Source of the DNA: Oikopleura dioica
Taxonomy: Eukaryota > Animalia > Chordata
Direction: 5' to 3'
Length of the DNA stretch: 64,000 nt
Assembly: GCA_907165135.1 (NCBI GenBank)
Contig: OU015566.1
Coordinates: 4,774,001 to 4,838,000 of the forward strand
Shown here piece by piece: positions 50,821-56,690 of this stretch (the stretch's first letter is position 1; each line of letters opens with the position of its first letter). The notes under the pieces were generated by a model. That model was not told the DNA's origin. It did not search any database and saw only the letters and a program-made list of their open reading frames with translations. Made by a program: the position numbers and the translations under genes.

Positions 50821-51438
50821 GAAACGTAACTTATCGTCCCTGAATCAACTATTTGATCTGTACGTCAAAAGCCTGCCTCTATTGAACTTTGGCGCTACAA
50901 CTTCCGGCGGACGTAGACGAGCTATAAATTCGTGGAATTTTGGAATTTCATTCGAGTAGCTATTTCAGAGACAAATCAAACGTCAAACGACAAAAAGAGA
51001 GAAAAAGAATGGTCTGCAATAGCGACAGTGACTGTATGAACGATGGAGTCTGCATCGTCAGAACAGGGAGAAGAATGTGCCATTGCTCCGGTTTTTACTG
51101 GCGCACATTGTCAGGTACTGATTTTCAAGATCTTTCTCTTTACCCGATTTTCTTAGAATGATGGTTTCATGGGCCTCGGATTTGACCACAATTCGAAAAC
51201 AGTGGAATCAAAAATTGACTCAAAAATGCCAAGTATCCTCTTTTTCGTCCTTATTTTCCTCCTCGTCGGGATTATTTTTGGTCTTTTTCTTCATATCCGA
51301 CAATTGACCAAAAGAATAACAGGTGAAACAAAGATAAATTTGTAATTTTTCAACCTTTTTCAAGAGAAAAACCAGCATCTTCGAAAATATCGACAACTTT
51401 TAAGCGAAGATTCGCGAAAAGAAAGAGCTCTACCCTGA
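50821..51438 (+). CDS. EGF-domain single-pass membrane protein (EGFR-ligand-like architecture) with an apparent frameshift; 5' end uncertain
   Basis: Basic KRQKERKR, then CNSDSDCMNDGVC..CHC, then a shifted frame FTGAHCQ, then TM ILFFVLIFLLVGIIFGLFL. Confidence 0.6.
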
Positions 51439-51554
51439 ATCCCTGACCTTGAAATGTCACTTCTAGCTACTGAAGTCCTTTACCTTGACTACAGGCTGAC
51501 TAGTCATTCAGTGTGCTACTATATTTGTACTGTACAGAAGAAATGTAAATAAAA

Positions 51555-54500
51555 TCAAGAGTTTGTGAATTCTTTGATTTTTCGAATTCCATCTTCTCCG
51601 ACAATATGGGTCACTTGCTCCATCAGTTGAGGCAGCTCGTTGGCGCAGAAAGTGTAGTAGGAGTAGTATGTAAGACTTGCAAAGGCAAAGTTAGGCTCCT
51701 CTTTTTTTGAAAATAACCTTGACTTACCTAACAAGCATGAAACTGAGCGGAAACGCCCGCCGCGCAATCCTGTCAATATCTGGTTTATTGATGAAGTTCG
51801 CGATCGCATATTCAACCACCGCGGCGAAGACGTAAGCCATGCAGATCGACATCTTTTTTCAAAGGTCAGGCAAGTTCTTATTACAGCTTATTCTTTCGTG
51901 AGAAGGAAAATTGATGACCTTGCCCAAATATCGATAGACATGACATACGAAACCATTGGCAGCGCTTTTGATAACGCAGATCGCTGCGAAGTGATGGTCA
52001 AGACTGTCGTAATTCCGAGCTGAAAATAAACTCATAACCCCATCTACCGGAAGTATGTAATTAGAATGGGTCGAAGACCCATTATTCGTATAATATGCGT
52101 AAAATGGGTCCGAGACCCATTCTAGCTATAATTTTGGTAAAATGGGTCTATTTTTCAACAAAATATAAGTTTTAGTTCAATTCAACTCTATTTAACAATT
52201 AAAAACATTTCCATGACTTGGGATATGGTTTACCGTCTCACTGCCCCATTTTTAACAGACATTATCAAATCTAAGTGTCCCTTACCTGGGGCTCCGCCCC
52301 TAGGTCCTAAGATGCCGGGGTCTAGTCTAGGGTTACTTAGGGTTACTTTCAGTAACCCTAACTAACCCTAGCCTATCCCCCTCGTGTGAGGTTGTTCTGT
52401 CATTTTGCCCAGTGCCCCTAACCCTAACCTTTATTGATAAAAAGTTAATGATAATAGACTCGTTCTAGACCCATTTTAGGCATAATATAGCAATAATGGG
52501 TCTCGGACCCATTTTACGCATAATATACGAATAATGGGTCCTGTACCCATTTTAGGCTTATTATAGAATAATGGGTCTCAGACCCATTCTAATTTCAACC
52601 TTCCCATCTACCCCCTTAAATTAAGGAGGTGTCAAAAACCGAAAAAATTTCGACAAATTTTACGTGGAAATTTTCAACGAATCAGAGGCCAGAATTCCGA
52701 ATTCGGCTCACCAACCGATCAGCAGCCAAGTAGCCGCCCACGCAAAATTTTTCGAAATTTTTTTGTCGGTTCCAGACGCCACCCCTTAAATTTCTTACAG
52801 AAACTCTAGCTGGAGTCGCCGTAATCGAAATCCAAAAGCTTATCCAACTAAGCATCACAATAAGCATTGTTGGAATATACGCCTGAATCAGGTAGTAGCC
52901 CATTTGCCGGGAAAGAAAGAACTTCGCCTCGACGCAAGAAAAGCTTCCCCGAGCACATTGGCACTTTCCAATGTGCAGCCCCTCCAGCGTATGTTGTGGG
53001 AGCTCGATTTTTCGAACATTGATCGCGTCTTCGAGCCACTCGAACTGGACGTCTTCGATGCGTAGTATGGAAAAATGTTTCGGTAAAGGCGACCGAAATA
53101 TTAATCACTTTCAATGGGTCAAATATGATAAATATTTCGGCAGGCAGCCGAAAGAATTATAAAAATTAGACTCGTTATTAGGAAAAATATTTCGGTACTA
53201 ACCGAAACGAAAATCAGAATTTGATGTCTTTTGAGCAATAAAGTTTCGGCAGTTTTTTCCATTATCATCCTGATTTGCGCTGGTATGTGCATTCAATGAG
53301 TGTGCCTTATCAATTTTCACCTCAAAAATCTAGAGTTACATGTATTTTCTGTTCTCATATTCAGAAGACCATCTCTGGCTTCATTCTTTATTTCGCAAAA
53401 ATGAATGAAGCCCATGATGAAAAATAGAAATCGTAGTATTTGCTAAAATAAAGGTTAGGGTTAGGGGCACCTGCAAAAATGACGGAACAAATAACCCGAG
53501 GGGGATAGGCTAGGGTTAGTTAGGGTTACTGAAGGTAACCCTAAGTAACCCTAGCCTAGACCCCGGCATCTTAGGACCTAAGGGGCGAAGCCGCGTGGTC
53601 AGGGAAACTTAGATTCCTTGATTTACGTCATCTTGCGCGCCTTTTTTTGCCGAAATCTTATTGCTAGAAACGACCTTAAAAGTGAAAAAGATTTCGGTAG
53701 CCTGCCGAAATATTTTTGTGAAAACAGTGGAAAAAGTGAAAAAATTTCGGCTGTTACCGAAATATTAATCAGAAAATAAGCTCACCACATTTCGGCAGTT
53801 TTACCGAAACATTTTTCCATACTACCCTTCGATGTCGTAGGCGAAGGACTCGATGGTGAGGCCGCAGGTTTGGACGTCCATCGGGAAGTTTTGAAATTTC
53901 ATCCGGCAGGTTAATATTGCCGAGAGTCTTGTTAAGGGTGTCAAACTTGCTTTTTACCTCATTTTTGAAGAAAGAAAAACAACGTTCCTGATTTCATAAT
54001 GAATATTTCCGGCGCTGTCGATTCTCAACCGCTTATTATCGGAAATGATGTCATGAGTCCTTGCTGATTTCTCATTCGCGAAAAAGGGAAAGTGTCAAAC
54101 TGCGATTCTTCGTTCGCGACAAACTTTTCCCGAAAAATACTGGCCACTGATTGGCCGGTAGGCCAAATACAGGCCTCTGATTGGCTTATTTTTCTCATGG
54201 ATTTTCCATGAAAGTTTGTCGCGAACGAAGAATCGCAGTTTGACATTGGCCCCGAAAAACGTCTTGAAAAATTTCTTTTCGCTTCATTTATCCGCGAAAA
54301 CTTACCTGGGATCCAGAGTTTGTCGAGAACTTTCAAGTCGAAGTTGAGAATTGTTCGATTTCGGAAGGTTTTTTCGCCAGGAATATAGGAAAAGAGCATC
54401 CTCGGATCTTGCCACTCCATTCTTTTGGACGATTAAGAGGGATTGATTTACGAGGAAAAATTACCGTAGGATATAAGTAAGGCCGAAATCCATTGTTGTT

Positions 54501-54847
54501 TCTTCGACCGAATCGATTGAGGAGACGAAAATGTTCATTTTTACTTTTAGTGGCTTTTATGAATGGATACTAAGATTCAAGAGCTTCATCAAAAAGTTAA
54601 AGTTATTACTTCAAATCCAAAGCTTCGTAAAAACATAAAAAAAGTCCGCGAAGAATATTATGGTGTCCATTTTTCCTGAATGTCTTCATATGGCCGCGTG
54701 TTTTTGTCCATTTTACCTTGAAAAAAGTCAAGTTTTTCGTCGAAAAAAATTTTTTTTCAACTCACTGATCAAATACTCAATCGTCTCTTCTTCCGTTCTC
54801 TCGCCGAAAATTCCGCCGAAAAGAAGAAAAACTGAAAAAACTAACAT
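51555..54847 (-). CDS. Cys-loop ligand-gated anion channel subunit (GlyR/GluCl-like)
   Basis: Signal peptide; DKNTRP; WIPD.FFANEK; Cys loop CRMKFQNFPMDVQTC; GYYLIQAYIP; PARVSLGITTVLT; SIDIWMSIC; VVEYAIANF; IDRIARRAFP. Confidence 0.92.
52049..52604. mobile_element. hAT-like TIR element with 8-bp TSD (catctacc), intronic
   Basis: ggaag..aattagaatgggtc..gacccattattc TIRs; TSD at 52041-52048 and 52605-52612; internal gggtc..gaccc repeats. Confidence 0.82.
52268..52437. repeat. TTAGGG/CCCTAA-containing dispersed repeat; inverted copy at 53445-53615
   Basis: ctagggttacttagggttac..taaccctaactaaccctag; second copy in reverse orientation; each copy is nested within a TIR element. Confidence 0.8.
52625..52785. 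mobile_element. TTAA-flanked MITE
   Basis: ttaa|ggaggtgtc..gacgccacccc|ttaa. Confidence 0.75.
53061..53826. mobile_element. 766-bp TIR element with 8-bp TSD (cttcgatg) inserted in coding sequence, probably spliced as a GG-AG intron
   Basis: 26-bp TIR gtagtatggaaaaatgtttcggtaaa; TSD at 53053-53060 and 53827-53834; removal restores FAYDIEDVQFEW. Confidence 0.9.
54086..54254. mobile_element. PIF/Tourist-like MITE interrupting the WIPDVF-FANEK exon
   Basis: 34-bp perfect TIR tgtcaaactgcgattcttcgttcgcgacaaactt; GGG/CCC ends; A-run flanks consistent with a 3-bp TSD. Confidence 0.8.
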
Positions 54848-55308
54848 TTCCGCAAGTGCAACTGTATTTTGGAAGCCTGTGGGTCACTTAGGTCGATCTT
54901 TTTTTTCTTCGATATTTATATCGAAATCGTGACACAAATACATAAATAATGAGCGAAAAGAACACGAAACAAGCCATCAAATATTCTGATACGGATTTCT
55001 TTCTTTTTCACTTTTTTGAGTGATTTACTCGAATATGACATTTGTACCTTTTGATGCTAATTTATCATTAATGCAAAAACAAAAAAGTTCAGAAAGGTTC
55101 GCCCTTTTTTCTTTAGATTTTGAGTAAATAATTTATTCAATAAACTAATAGAGATAGAAATTTAAACAGTAAAAATCGGAGGCAGTAAGAGTTCTTTTTC
55201 GTATTAATGCTTGATCATGCTCCCCAGGTATACTGTCTTCCTCGGCCGAGCAGTTTTTCTTCTTGTTTCGTTGGATCCTGAAATGGCTTGAAAACGAATC
55301 AGAAGGGC

Positions 55309-56690
55309 TCAAAATACCTGATAACCAGTCGGACAAGTTTCAGCCGCAGTCAAGCAATCTCCGTTCAGAAGATCTTTGACGAGGCAAAAATTGACCTGGC
55401 AAGTTAGAGACAAGTCGGTGTTGATTTGCTCGCGGCTGAATTGAAAACTTCGGAAGCTCCAGTTGACCGCTTTGACTTGGGAAGGAGTGGAGGATTTGAG
55501 CTCGGTGCTGATGATTTTCGCGCCGCAGCCGTCTTCGATGACGGCAAAGGTCTGTTTTTGGATGAAAAATGCAAATTTGGCCAAAAATTGGTCAAAAATT
55601 TTAGTCAGGAAGAGTTTTGGTCAAAAAATTTGGTCAAAAAATAAATTTTGGTCAAAAAATAAATTTTGGTCAAAAACTTTTGGTCAAAAAATAAATTTTG
55701 GTCAAAAACTTTTGGTCAAAAAATTTTGGTCAAAAATAAATTTTGGTCAAAAAACTTTTGGTAAAAAATTTTTAGTCAAAATTATTCAACCCAATCCTGG
55801 TTGTAGTCTTCCGAAGCAATCAAACAATCTTGCAAATGGAAAAGAACCGGGAACTCGTCGGAAAAGTCCTCATTCCATTCGACCTGAAAGTTGAGCGTCT
55901 CTCCAAGAACGAGTTCAGAAGCATTGAGCGGCGTGAGAAAATCCGGCTCGAAGAAAGAAAGCGTCATCGTCTCATCCCAGGACACATCTTGGTCGATCGT
56001 CTTTTCTGCGTCGGTCCGGAAGGTCGTGACGGGACTGTAGATGCCTTTGGTCGTTTCGGACCACTGGCGGTAGTTGCAGTTGAAGACGAAATCGCCGTAC
56101 TCGCCGAAGTAGAATTGGGTGCCGCCGAAGAAGCGCATTTGGTTGCCGAAATTGAGTCTTGAGAGGGAAATTTCTGTTCTTTTCGATTAGCCAATAAGAT
56201 TGCGCGCGCGAAATTCAATCATTAAATTTCCGCCATTCCTGGAAGTAAAAGTAATGTGCATTTCTTCATCGATGTTTTTCTGCTCCGTTTCCATGCCGCA
56301 CTCGCCAAGGGGAATTCCAAAGACGAAGCCGTCGACCTTCGGGTCATACGACAAGTTGGAGTTGCAATTCGTCGCTGGAATGCTGTTGAACTCGGCTTCG
56401 GTTTTGAGCGAGATGATGGACTGGTCACCGAGAGCGAAGGAGTTGATGGCGTTTCGCTTGACGAAGCCGTGCATTGTGTTGTGAACACACTTTTTAAGAG
56501 CTCTAGAGAGGAAATTTTTATCAAAATTTAAAATATTTTTCCCGACCAATTCTTTTTTTTGAAATAATTAAAGAGCCCAGTCCTTGATGCAAATCTCTTT
56601 CTTCATGTCGCAATCATCTTTGACCACAAATTTCTTGTCGTTGAATCCGAGCGCGAAGCCGATCAAAATGCACGGAGAAAATTTCACCAT
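55309..56690 (-). CDS. Secreted ZP-domain protein
   Basis: Signal MVKFSPCILIGFALG; GIPLGECGM; VFNCNY; LGETLNFQVEW..HLQDC; VIEDGC; WSFRSFQF..LTCQVNFC; GA-AG intron 55552-55796. Confidence 0.85.
55590..55780. repeat. Intronic tandem repeat (ttttggtcaaaaa)
   Basis: About 12 imperfect 13-20-bp copies. Confidence 0.85.

Follow-up and report, generated by a model that had tools for sequence, protein, structure and literature searches.

The intracellular domain (ICD) between transmembrane (TM) segments M3 and M4 of Cys-loop receptors is credited with functions in assembly, trafficking, clustering, conductance and modulation, and a long M3-M4 loop is described in reviews and experimental papers as a constant feature of eukaryotic Cys-loop subunits. 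Eukaryotic loops are given as 50-225 residues, or elsewhere in the same paper as all longer than 75, and prokaryotic ones as shorter than 15 (PMC3335078); the short prokaryotic loops are also contrasted with the eukaryotic ones in PMC4891346. Here we describe g1299, a gene on chromosome 1 of Oikopleura dioica OKI2018_I69 (GCA_907165135.1), located in a window of 64,000 nt of contig OU015566.1 (positions 4,774,001 to 4,838,000). On the best reading of its sequence, g1299 encodes a subunit of an anion-selective pLGIC (pentameric ligand-gated ion channel) of the glycine receptor (GlyR)/glutamate-gated chloride channel (GluCl) type, and the ICD is missing from its DNA. It is the locus of the public protein P0196, and the sequence of that locus is identical to the window.

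The larvacean proteins share with the GLRA1-4 subunits about 49% identity over the extracellular domain (ECD) and M1-M3, the FPMDVQTC Cys-loop, the loop-C disulfide, the P-A-R filter, a GlyR-type M2 and the pre-M4 motif ID..R..FP. They differ in the absence of the ICD (about 72 residues, among them the RRKRR cluster and MA helix), in a loop C two residues shorter, and in having some 30 residues of tail beyond M4. Joining of M3 to M4 by a few residues is also found in engineered loop-deleted receptors (GluCl-cryst, GlyR alpha-3 with a tripeptide, GlyR-EM, the chimeras with the GLIC heptapeptide SQPARAA and 5-HT3A-A2 to -A7), which assemble and gate (PMC3335078, PMC4891346, PMC7995613). Unlike in these constructs, the larvacean link is natural, conserved under selection, and 7-11 residues shorter than in the solved GlyR constructs; human GlyR alpha-1, moreover, requires flanking basic motifs, the first of which larvaceans lack. 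GLIC and ELIC are similar in their very short M3-M4 loop and in consisting of an ECD and four TM segments without an ICD. However, the larvacean proteins retain the Cys-loop cysteines and the loop-C disulfide and share about 49% identity with vertebrate GlyR alpha, and therefore the short loop is a secondary loss within the metazoan anionic clade. A known tunicate GlyR-alpha-like gene encodes a glycine-gated, strychnine-sensitive receptor with a role in swimming; its paper reports no loop loss. No paper on an Oikopleura glycine-receptor loop or on the loss described here was found in the searchable literature.

The loss is contained within a single exon, exon 9 (Table 1). The minus-strand open reading frame (ORF) 51724..51852 reads without interruption from M3 (MSICMAYVFAAVVEYAIANFI) through N-K-P-D into IDRIARRAFPLSFML, and the pre-M4 motif directly following the link is IDRIARRAFP. 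The preliminary description of this DNA had stated that one exon reads M3 straight into the pre-M4 ID..R..FP motif, and the ORF reads exactly as quoted there. In a comparison with all PDB chain sequences, residues 1-25 of exon 9 align to M3 of human GlyR alpha-2 (321-345) and residues 24-40 to the pre-M4 region (416-432), leaving about 70 residues of GlyR alpha-2 between the two segments without a counterpart. Even the engineered loop-deleted constructs 4x5t, 5bkf and 3jad can be aligned over their full length only by opening gaps of 7-11 residues in the query, the exon 9 stretch being shorter by that number. The M3 and pre-M4 codons are only 12 bases apart, so that there is no room for an additional exon between them. 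The loss of the ICD in the DNA of g1299 is confirmed. The link of about three residues assumed initially comprises four by alignment, and two non-helical residues in the AlphaFold model of a paralog. The earlier characterisation of g1299 as a naturally ICD-less animal gene of the anion-channel type is borne out: it is a tunicate gene with a full Cys-loop, a loop-C disulfide pair, a P-A-R filter and four TM segments, and the ICD is absent from the DNA.

Exon 9 is flanked by an acceptor (AG) at 51853 and by a donor reading AG|GTAAGT at 51727, and the following 52-nt intron keeps the frame into M4. The spliced M4, FPLSFMLVSLTYYSYY, aligns without gaps to FPLVFLIFNIFYWIIY of GlyR and is equal to it in length, residue for residue. 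A 34-37-nt intron after FML at the exon 9-10 junction was considered and dropped, as the 52-nt GT-AG intron yields an M4 of GlyR length.

The same arrangement is found at other loci. A search with exon 9 gave two short ORFs elsewhere, and their contigs, together with a metagenome scan using the exon alignment, gave further loci, namely L003, on a 12-kb contig of GCA_977009715.1, and L004/L005/L006 and L007/L008, on marine metagenome contigs of the Joint Genome Institute (JGI). Each of L003-L008 reads ...EYA[IV]ANF[IN]-x-K-P-[DE]-IDR[IL][AS]RR[AV]FP... within one exon. The arrangement is not due to chance: besides two transcript contigs, five genomic loci independent of each other show it, and the contiguity is seen in separate assemblies, two from NCBI and four from JGI. 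The ortholog L003 (paralog A) is intact, with 373 codons in seven exons, and its protein is 74-75% identical to that of the window gene. Between the two, over 370 aligned codons, the proportion of synonymous differences (pS) is 0.84 (saturated) and that of nonsynonymous differences (pN) is 0.144; the respective values are 0.78 and 0.068 for M1-M3, and 0.81 and 0.061 for exon 9.

A profile of the exon 5-7 pieces was used for a protein search, in which the E-values are profile scores for exons 5-7 only. It retrieved P0159 (gene g15989 of the Okinawa X-specific region) and two Logan proteins, P0158 with 409 residues and P0157 with 338. A second paralog, B, with the same link is present at locus L012 of the Okinawa X-specific region and on the JGI contigs L004-L008. 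In the 41 codons of exon 9, Okinawa paralog B (L012) and L005 are separated by 26 synonymous and no replacement differences. Both paralogs have kept the short link since their duplication, and the codon comparisons show it to be conserved under purifying selection. The ICD-less link is thus common to at least two O. dioica paralogs and to several lineages and is not peculiar to the window locus. The paralog B locus (L012 5001-7775, OU015569.1) is split into two genes in the public annotation: g15989 (325 residues) runs into an intron behind M1 and ends there, while M2-M4 are assigned to another call of 88 residues. Transcript contig L010 joins both calls as one mRNA of 409 codons. In public databases the family exists only as unnamed, partly mis-modelled predictions.

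In a maximum-likelihood tree of 21 sequences, in which paralog A was represented by the window gene and L003, and paralog B by P0158 and P0157, the two paralogs form one clade with support of 100/100, each being monophyletic (99/98 and 96/95, respectively). The ICD was therefore lost before the A/B duplication. A family of ICD-less GlyR/GluCl-type subunits whose ICD was lost before this duplication is, as a whole, the explanation in which we have high confidence.

Paralog B is expressed as a spliced mRNA carrying the short link. Transcript contig L010 (1310 nt, SRR26183952, 409-residue ORF) consists of blocks 100% identical to genomic L005 with introns of 75, 58 and 40 nt removed, and L011 (1143 nt, ERR1712242, 338-residue ORF) lacks all six introns of genomic L007. 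Both read ...ANFIDKPDIDRLARRAFP... from M3 via the link into the full M4. An insert between M3 and the pre-M4 motif, which was to be sought in cDNA, is therefore absent from paralog B in two lineages.

To place the link among relatives, distances in residues between the SYV.AID.W-like motif of M2-M3 and the ID..R...P motif of pre-M4 were determined for every relative retrieved. Among 46 units in the best 150 representatives of a library of 1.84 billion proteins, the window model has a distance of 34 and the next smallest is 71. After 120 hits had been added, 121 M3-M4 units were available in 272 relatives: only P0157, P0158 and P0196 have a distance of 34, and the remaining 118 have at least 71, i.e. 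are at least 37 residues longer than the larvacean proteins. Neither the nearest named relatives (fish GlyR alpha-2, alpha-3 and alpha-4) nor the farther 'GlyR-like' ones from hemichordates, echinoderms, acoels, nemerteans, molluscs and annelids are short-looped. The suspicion that short loops might already be common in described tunicate subunits finds no further case among the 272 relatives retrieved, whose named members include no ascidian subunit.

Three candidate precedents were rejected. The 'GlyR alpha-2' entries of Macrostomum, short at 350-389 residues, stem from truncated models without M4; among the Alvinella Alpo receptors, Alpo4 carries an ICD at residues 308-412; and in L009 the pre-M4 motif lies about 74 codons downstream of M3 in the same frame, as would fit a loop of ordinary length. 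L009 (4547-5405 of JAALOO010000093.1) is a distant anionic pLGIC with an M3 ending in H-K-P-D. The K-P-D of the larvacean link may represent the original start of the ICD.

The fold was predicted with AlphaFold2, from a 50-row alignment, for the paralog B transcript product P0158 as a stand-in for the window protein. The mean predicted local distance difference test (pLDDT) score is 80.7, with values of 85-92 at the M3-M4 turn. In the model, beta strands are followed by four helices; the M3 helix spans residues 326-353, the turn leaves no residue but D354 and K355 outside a helix, and the M4 helix begins at P356. The top Foldseek matches are GlyR alpha-2 and alpha-3 (E about 1e-39, identity 47-48%, TM-score 0.75-0.79 normalised by target length), and the predicted fold is shown to be GlyR-like. 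A tail of 25-30 residues following M4 is present in all larvacean A and B proteins (window 51555-51650; L003 5934-6042; P0158 380-409) and begins with C-x-N-E-[LI]-P, that of GlyR alpha-1 being about 10 residues long. AlphaFold extends M4 into this tail as a single long helix with low confidence.

The channel features of the family are largely those of GlyR. Pfam matches on individual exons and the strands and four TM helices of the P0158 model place the proteins in the superfamily, and the four larvacean sequences all contain two cysteines 13 residues apart (C-x13-C) and the FPMD motif. The anionic branch is indicated by P-A-R at the mouth of M2 on the cytoplasmic side (-2' to 0'), within TPARVS ahead of LGITTVLT. 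The second disulfide pair of GlyR alpha in loop C is present as C-x8-C, compared with C-x10-C in GlyR alpha-1. The pore residues R0', T6' and L9' and the tyrosine of the M2-M3 linker are retained, and the pore, P-A-R filter, M2-M3 linker and Cys-loop are the slowest-evolving parts. Relative to GlyR alpha-1, R65, D97, R119, E157, F159, Y161 and F207 are kept. The best pairwise identity of the larvacean proteins is to vertebrate GLRA proteins; a prokaryote-type pLGIC is not indicated, as both cysteines are present and all top matches are metazoan GlyR-type proteins. In place of the large GlyR alpha ICD of about 75 residues, with its basic clusters and MA helix, there are four residues, beside which basic residues (K, R, RR) are still present. 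These features are best read as those of a working anion-selective ligand-gated subunit. 5-HT3A channels function with loops of 2-7 alanines (PMC3335078), and GlyR alpha-1 with a minimal loop works when this is flanked by basic residues (PMC4891346); the ICD is also reported to tune agonist efficacy (PMC7995613).

We propose that the ancestor of the sampled larvacean lineages lost the whole M3-M4 ICD before duplication into A (chromosome 1) and B (X-specific region). M3 ends in ...ANFI, two to four residues (x-K-P-D/E) form a tight cytoplasmic turn, and a proline opens the M4 helix (PDIDRIARRAFP...), making the subunit a natural equivalent of the loop-deleted constructs produced for structures. 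Pentamers would assemble and chloride would pass directly from the pore to the cytoplasm, with no MA-helix portals, loop phosphorylation sites or loop-borne anchoring motifs. Pentamer assembly and anion conduction, like the identity of the agonist and the consequences for clustering and conductance suggested in the preliminary description, are what we infer here.

The model of g1299 combines a reading of all six frames with matches in Pfam and the PDB and with the junctions as inspected by eye. The gene lies on the minus strand (54847 to 51555) and comprises 10 exons with 376 codons in frame, encoding a signal peptide, loops A-F, the Cys-loop, the cysteine pair of loop C, M1, the P-A-R filter, a GlyR-type M2, M3, the link and M4, followed by about 30 tail residues. 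Four of its introns are GT-AG, two GA-AG, one GC-AG and one GG-AG, and one has a GT donor but an unclear acceptor; most are 43-122 nt long. The exon 2-3 junction is fixed by L003, where the same residues occur without an intron (YEDIMPLRVK), and the exon 5 residues run on into exons 6-7 in L001 and L003. The public model P0196 (g1299, 261 residues, unnamed) agrees with the rebuilt one in M2-M4 and the tail; it begins at an internal methionine and fuses exon 4 directly to exon 7, thus skipping exons 5-6. Intron positions vary widely across lineages: introns 2, 5 and 6 are absent from L003 and L001, an extra intron occurs in the M2-M3 linker of L004/L005 and L012, and L001 has one directly after LGITTVLT.

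Table 1. Exons of g1299, insertions in the gene and neighbouring genes, in window coordinates.
Feature	Position	Strand	Remarks
Exon 1	54766..54847	-	Start codon and signal peptide (MLVFSVFLLFGG...); GT donor; equivalent first exon in ortholog L003
Exon 2	54676..54716	-	KMDKNTRPYEDIQ; followed by a 122-nt GA-AG intron (54554-54675)
Exon 3	54465..54553	-	Beta1-beta2; bears the R65 equivalent
Exon 4	54306..54421	-	MEWQDPRM...LWIP; strong GTAAGT donor
Young miniature inverted-repeat transposable element (MITE)	54094..54262 (outer bounds approximate)		About 170 nt, terminal inverted repeats of about 35 nt; in the loop-A codons (DVFFANEK)
Exon 5	53988..54093	-	FFANEKSARTHD...HYEIR; 5' boundary uncertain in the window allele; followed by a 60-nt GA-AG intron (53928-53987)
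Exon 6	53827..53927	-	Cys-loop CRMKFQNFPMDVQTC; Pfam Neur_chan_LBD, E 1.9e-9
774-nt transposon and one copy of its 8-bp target duplication	53053..53826		Target duplication CATCGAAG; inverted ends (GGTAGTATGGAAAAATGTTTCGG...)
Exon 7	52799..53052	-	Loop C with cysteine pair, M1, P-A-R anion filter; top PDB sequence matches GlyR alpha-2/alpha-1/alpha-3, E 4e-23
Exon 8	51924..52019	-	M2 and M2-M3 linker; GC donor (GC-AG intron 51853-51923)
Exon 9	51728..51852	-	M3, four-residue link and start of M4
N-K-P-D codons	51778..51789	-	All that is present at the ICD position of other animal subunits
Intron inside M4	51676..51727	-	52 nt, GT-AG; same junction in the public model P0196
Exon 10	51555..51675	-	Remaining M4, conserved tail of about 30 residues, stop codon
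Neighbouring gene	50940-51345	+	EGF-like single-pass membrane protein; ends about 200 nt from the receptor stop codon, in tail-to-tail orientation
Upstream neighbouring gene	about 55200-56540	-	Zona-pellucida-domain gene (Pfam tag)

The window allele carries two insertions. The 774-nt element lies between the Cys-loop exon and the loop-C/M1 exon, its site is empty in L013, L001 and L003, and it is exactly removable only as a GG-AG intron, restoring YDIEDVQFEW. An internal part of about 170 nt of this element recurs at 52268-52435 in intron 7 with 89% identity. The MITE has no further copy in the window; its site is empty in L013 (LWIP|DVFFANEK), and L003 reads LWIP|DVFFSNEK. L013 (ENA ERZ27290310 k119_109921; positions 1-1074, compared with window 54335-52799) matches exons 4-7 and introns 4-5 of the window at about 90% identity and contains neither insertion. 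Directly after ...MLSWISFWI it changes to a different M2/M3 (PARTSLGVTT ... IDYWMTTCMIFVFAALLEYAIVQWISRKDKD...) leading into an ordinary ICD start. It is either a chimera of metagenome assembly or a recombinant paralog whose ligand-binding domain is of the A type.

Several observations weigh against the preferred explanation. Three bulk RNA runs and one single-cell run, all labelled with this species, together placed on the gene (51300-55000) two partial reads with less than 90% identity. The O. dioica lineages are about 20-30% apart in coding DNA, and the runs probably come from another lineage; this result is no test either way. No intron that begins with G and ends in AG (G*-AG) restores the loop-A reading across the MITE. 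Of the full set of glycine contacts (F63, R65, S129, E157, F159, Y202, T204 and F207), R65, E157, F159 and F207 are kept, F63I, S129E, Y202C/S and T204R being found in all four larvacean sequences; because these positions are altered and loop C is two residues shorter, glycine is uncertain as agonist, and it is doubtful as ligand. The larvacean link lacks the first basic cluster (RRKRR), and human GlyR alpha-1 with the GLIC heptapeptide alone aggregates unless the basic clusters are retained (PMC4891346). In the tree, the larvacean clade lies on a long branch in an unresolved polytomy with vertebrate GlyR alpha (21 taxa). Finally, the channel function of the larvacean proteins is deduced from their sequences and a structural model.

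Some of these points concern the window copy alone. It may be that the loss of the ICD is real and ancient, but that this copy, belonging to one OKI2018_I69 haplotype, has recently become a null or hypomorphic allele through the MITE in loop A. The insertion breaks DVFFANEK, its 5' flank differs by 2 nt from the empty site of L013, and exons 5-6 are skipped in the public model; the in-frame options across it delete or replace loop-A residues, or require a GT...AC excision at the MITE terminus. However, O. dioica is known for non-canonical introns, g1299 itself already uses GA-AG, GC-AG and probably GG-AG introns, and the GT...AC excision ending at the MITE end would stay in frame, giving D-F-P-F-F-A-N-E-K. 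We consider this possibility slightly better than even, the copy of the window haplotype being, from its sequence, probably impaired. Such an impairment leaves the conclusion on the gene family untouched.

The altered glycine contacts and the missing basic cluster could also mean that the subunits, although conserved and expressed, form no ligand-gated channel alone and are obligate partners of ICD-bearing subunits or non-channel binding proteins. Three glycine-contact residues are changed, the cluster is required for surface expression of human GlyR alpha-1 (PMC4891346), and a conserved extracellular tail follows M4. Nevertheless, M2, the P-A-R filter, the M2-M3 tyrosine and the FPMD of the Cys-loop are kept and are the most conserved parts (pN 0.068 for M1-M3), a pattern expected only if gating and conduction matter, and a heteromer would still contain an ICD-less channel subunit. 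This alternative is unlikely.

It is far less probable that the short link is a lesion, g1299 being a decaying pseudogene with deleted ICD-coding DNA. The two transposon insertions in former exons, the failure of the public model to join exons 4-5-6 and the lack of usable RNA reads would fit decay. Against this, an intact ortholog and a second paralog share the link across at least four lineages, pN/pS being far below 1, and transcripts of the paralog carry it; the other nine exons of the window gene contain no stop codon or frameshift; and the insertions are missing from L013, so that they are much younger than the loss of the ICD. Least probable of all, and hardly credible, is an overlooked ICD exon or an artefact of assembly or annotation: the public models of both paralogs are indeed faulty elsewhere and L013 joins A-like ECD and M1 exons to another M2-M3 with an ordinary ICD start, but 12 bases within a single exon leave no place for an exon, the contiguity is found in independent assemblies and two spliced transcripts, and nothing in the window corresponds to the second half of L013, which is therefore another gene or a chimera.

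The preferred reading therefore remains that of an ICD-less GlyR/GluCl-type subunit family. The finding is a secondarily ICD-less family of chordate Cys-loop receptors. The larvacean lineage is known for genome compaction, and here a clean loss of a domain is dated to before a gene duplication. Since engineered loop deletions already work, the mechanism of the receptors is not overturned, and the value of the finding is comparative and practical. As a conserved, expressed family, these subunits represent a natural counter-example to the universal long loop, show which functions of the ICD an animal can dispense with, and provide full-length wild-type proteins for structure determination without loop engineering. 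More tentatively, and with less than even probability, larvaceans may run fast inhibitory or chloride signalling with ICD-less A and/or B subunits, localisation or modulation having possibly moved to the post-M4 tail; as the orthosteric site is remodelled by the E129/R204 pair, glycine may not be the agonist. If this tentative reading is true, a metazoan Cys-loop receptor can fold, traffic, localise and gate in vivo with a two-residue M3-M4 turn, and the larvacean proteins would be ready wild-type cryo-EM targets for a complete eukaryotic pLGIC.

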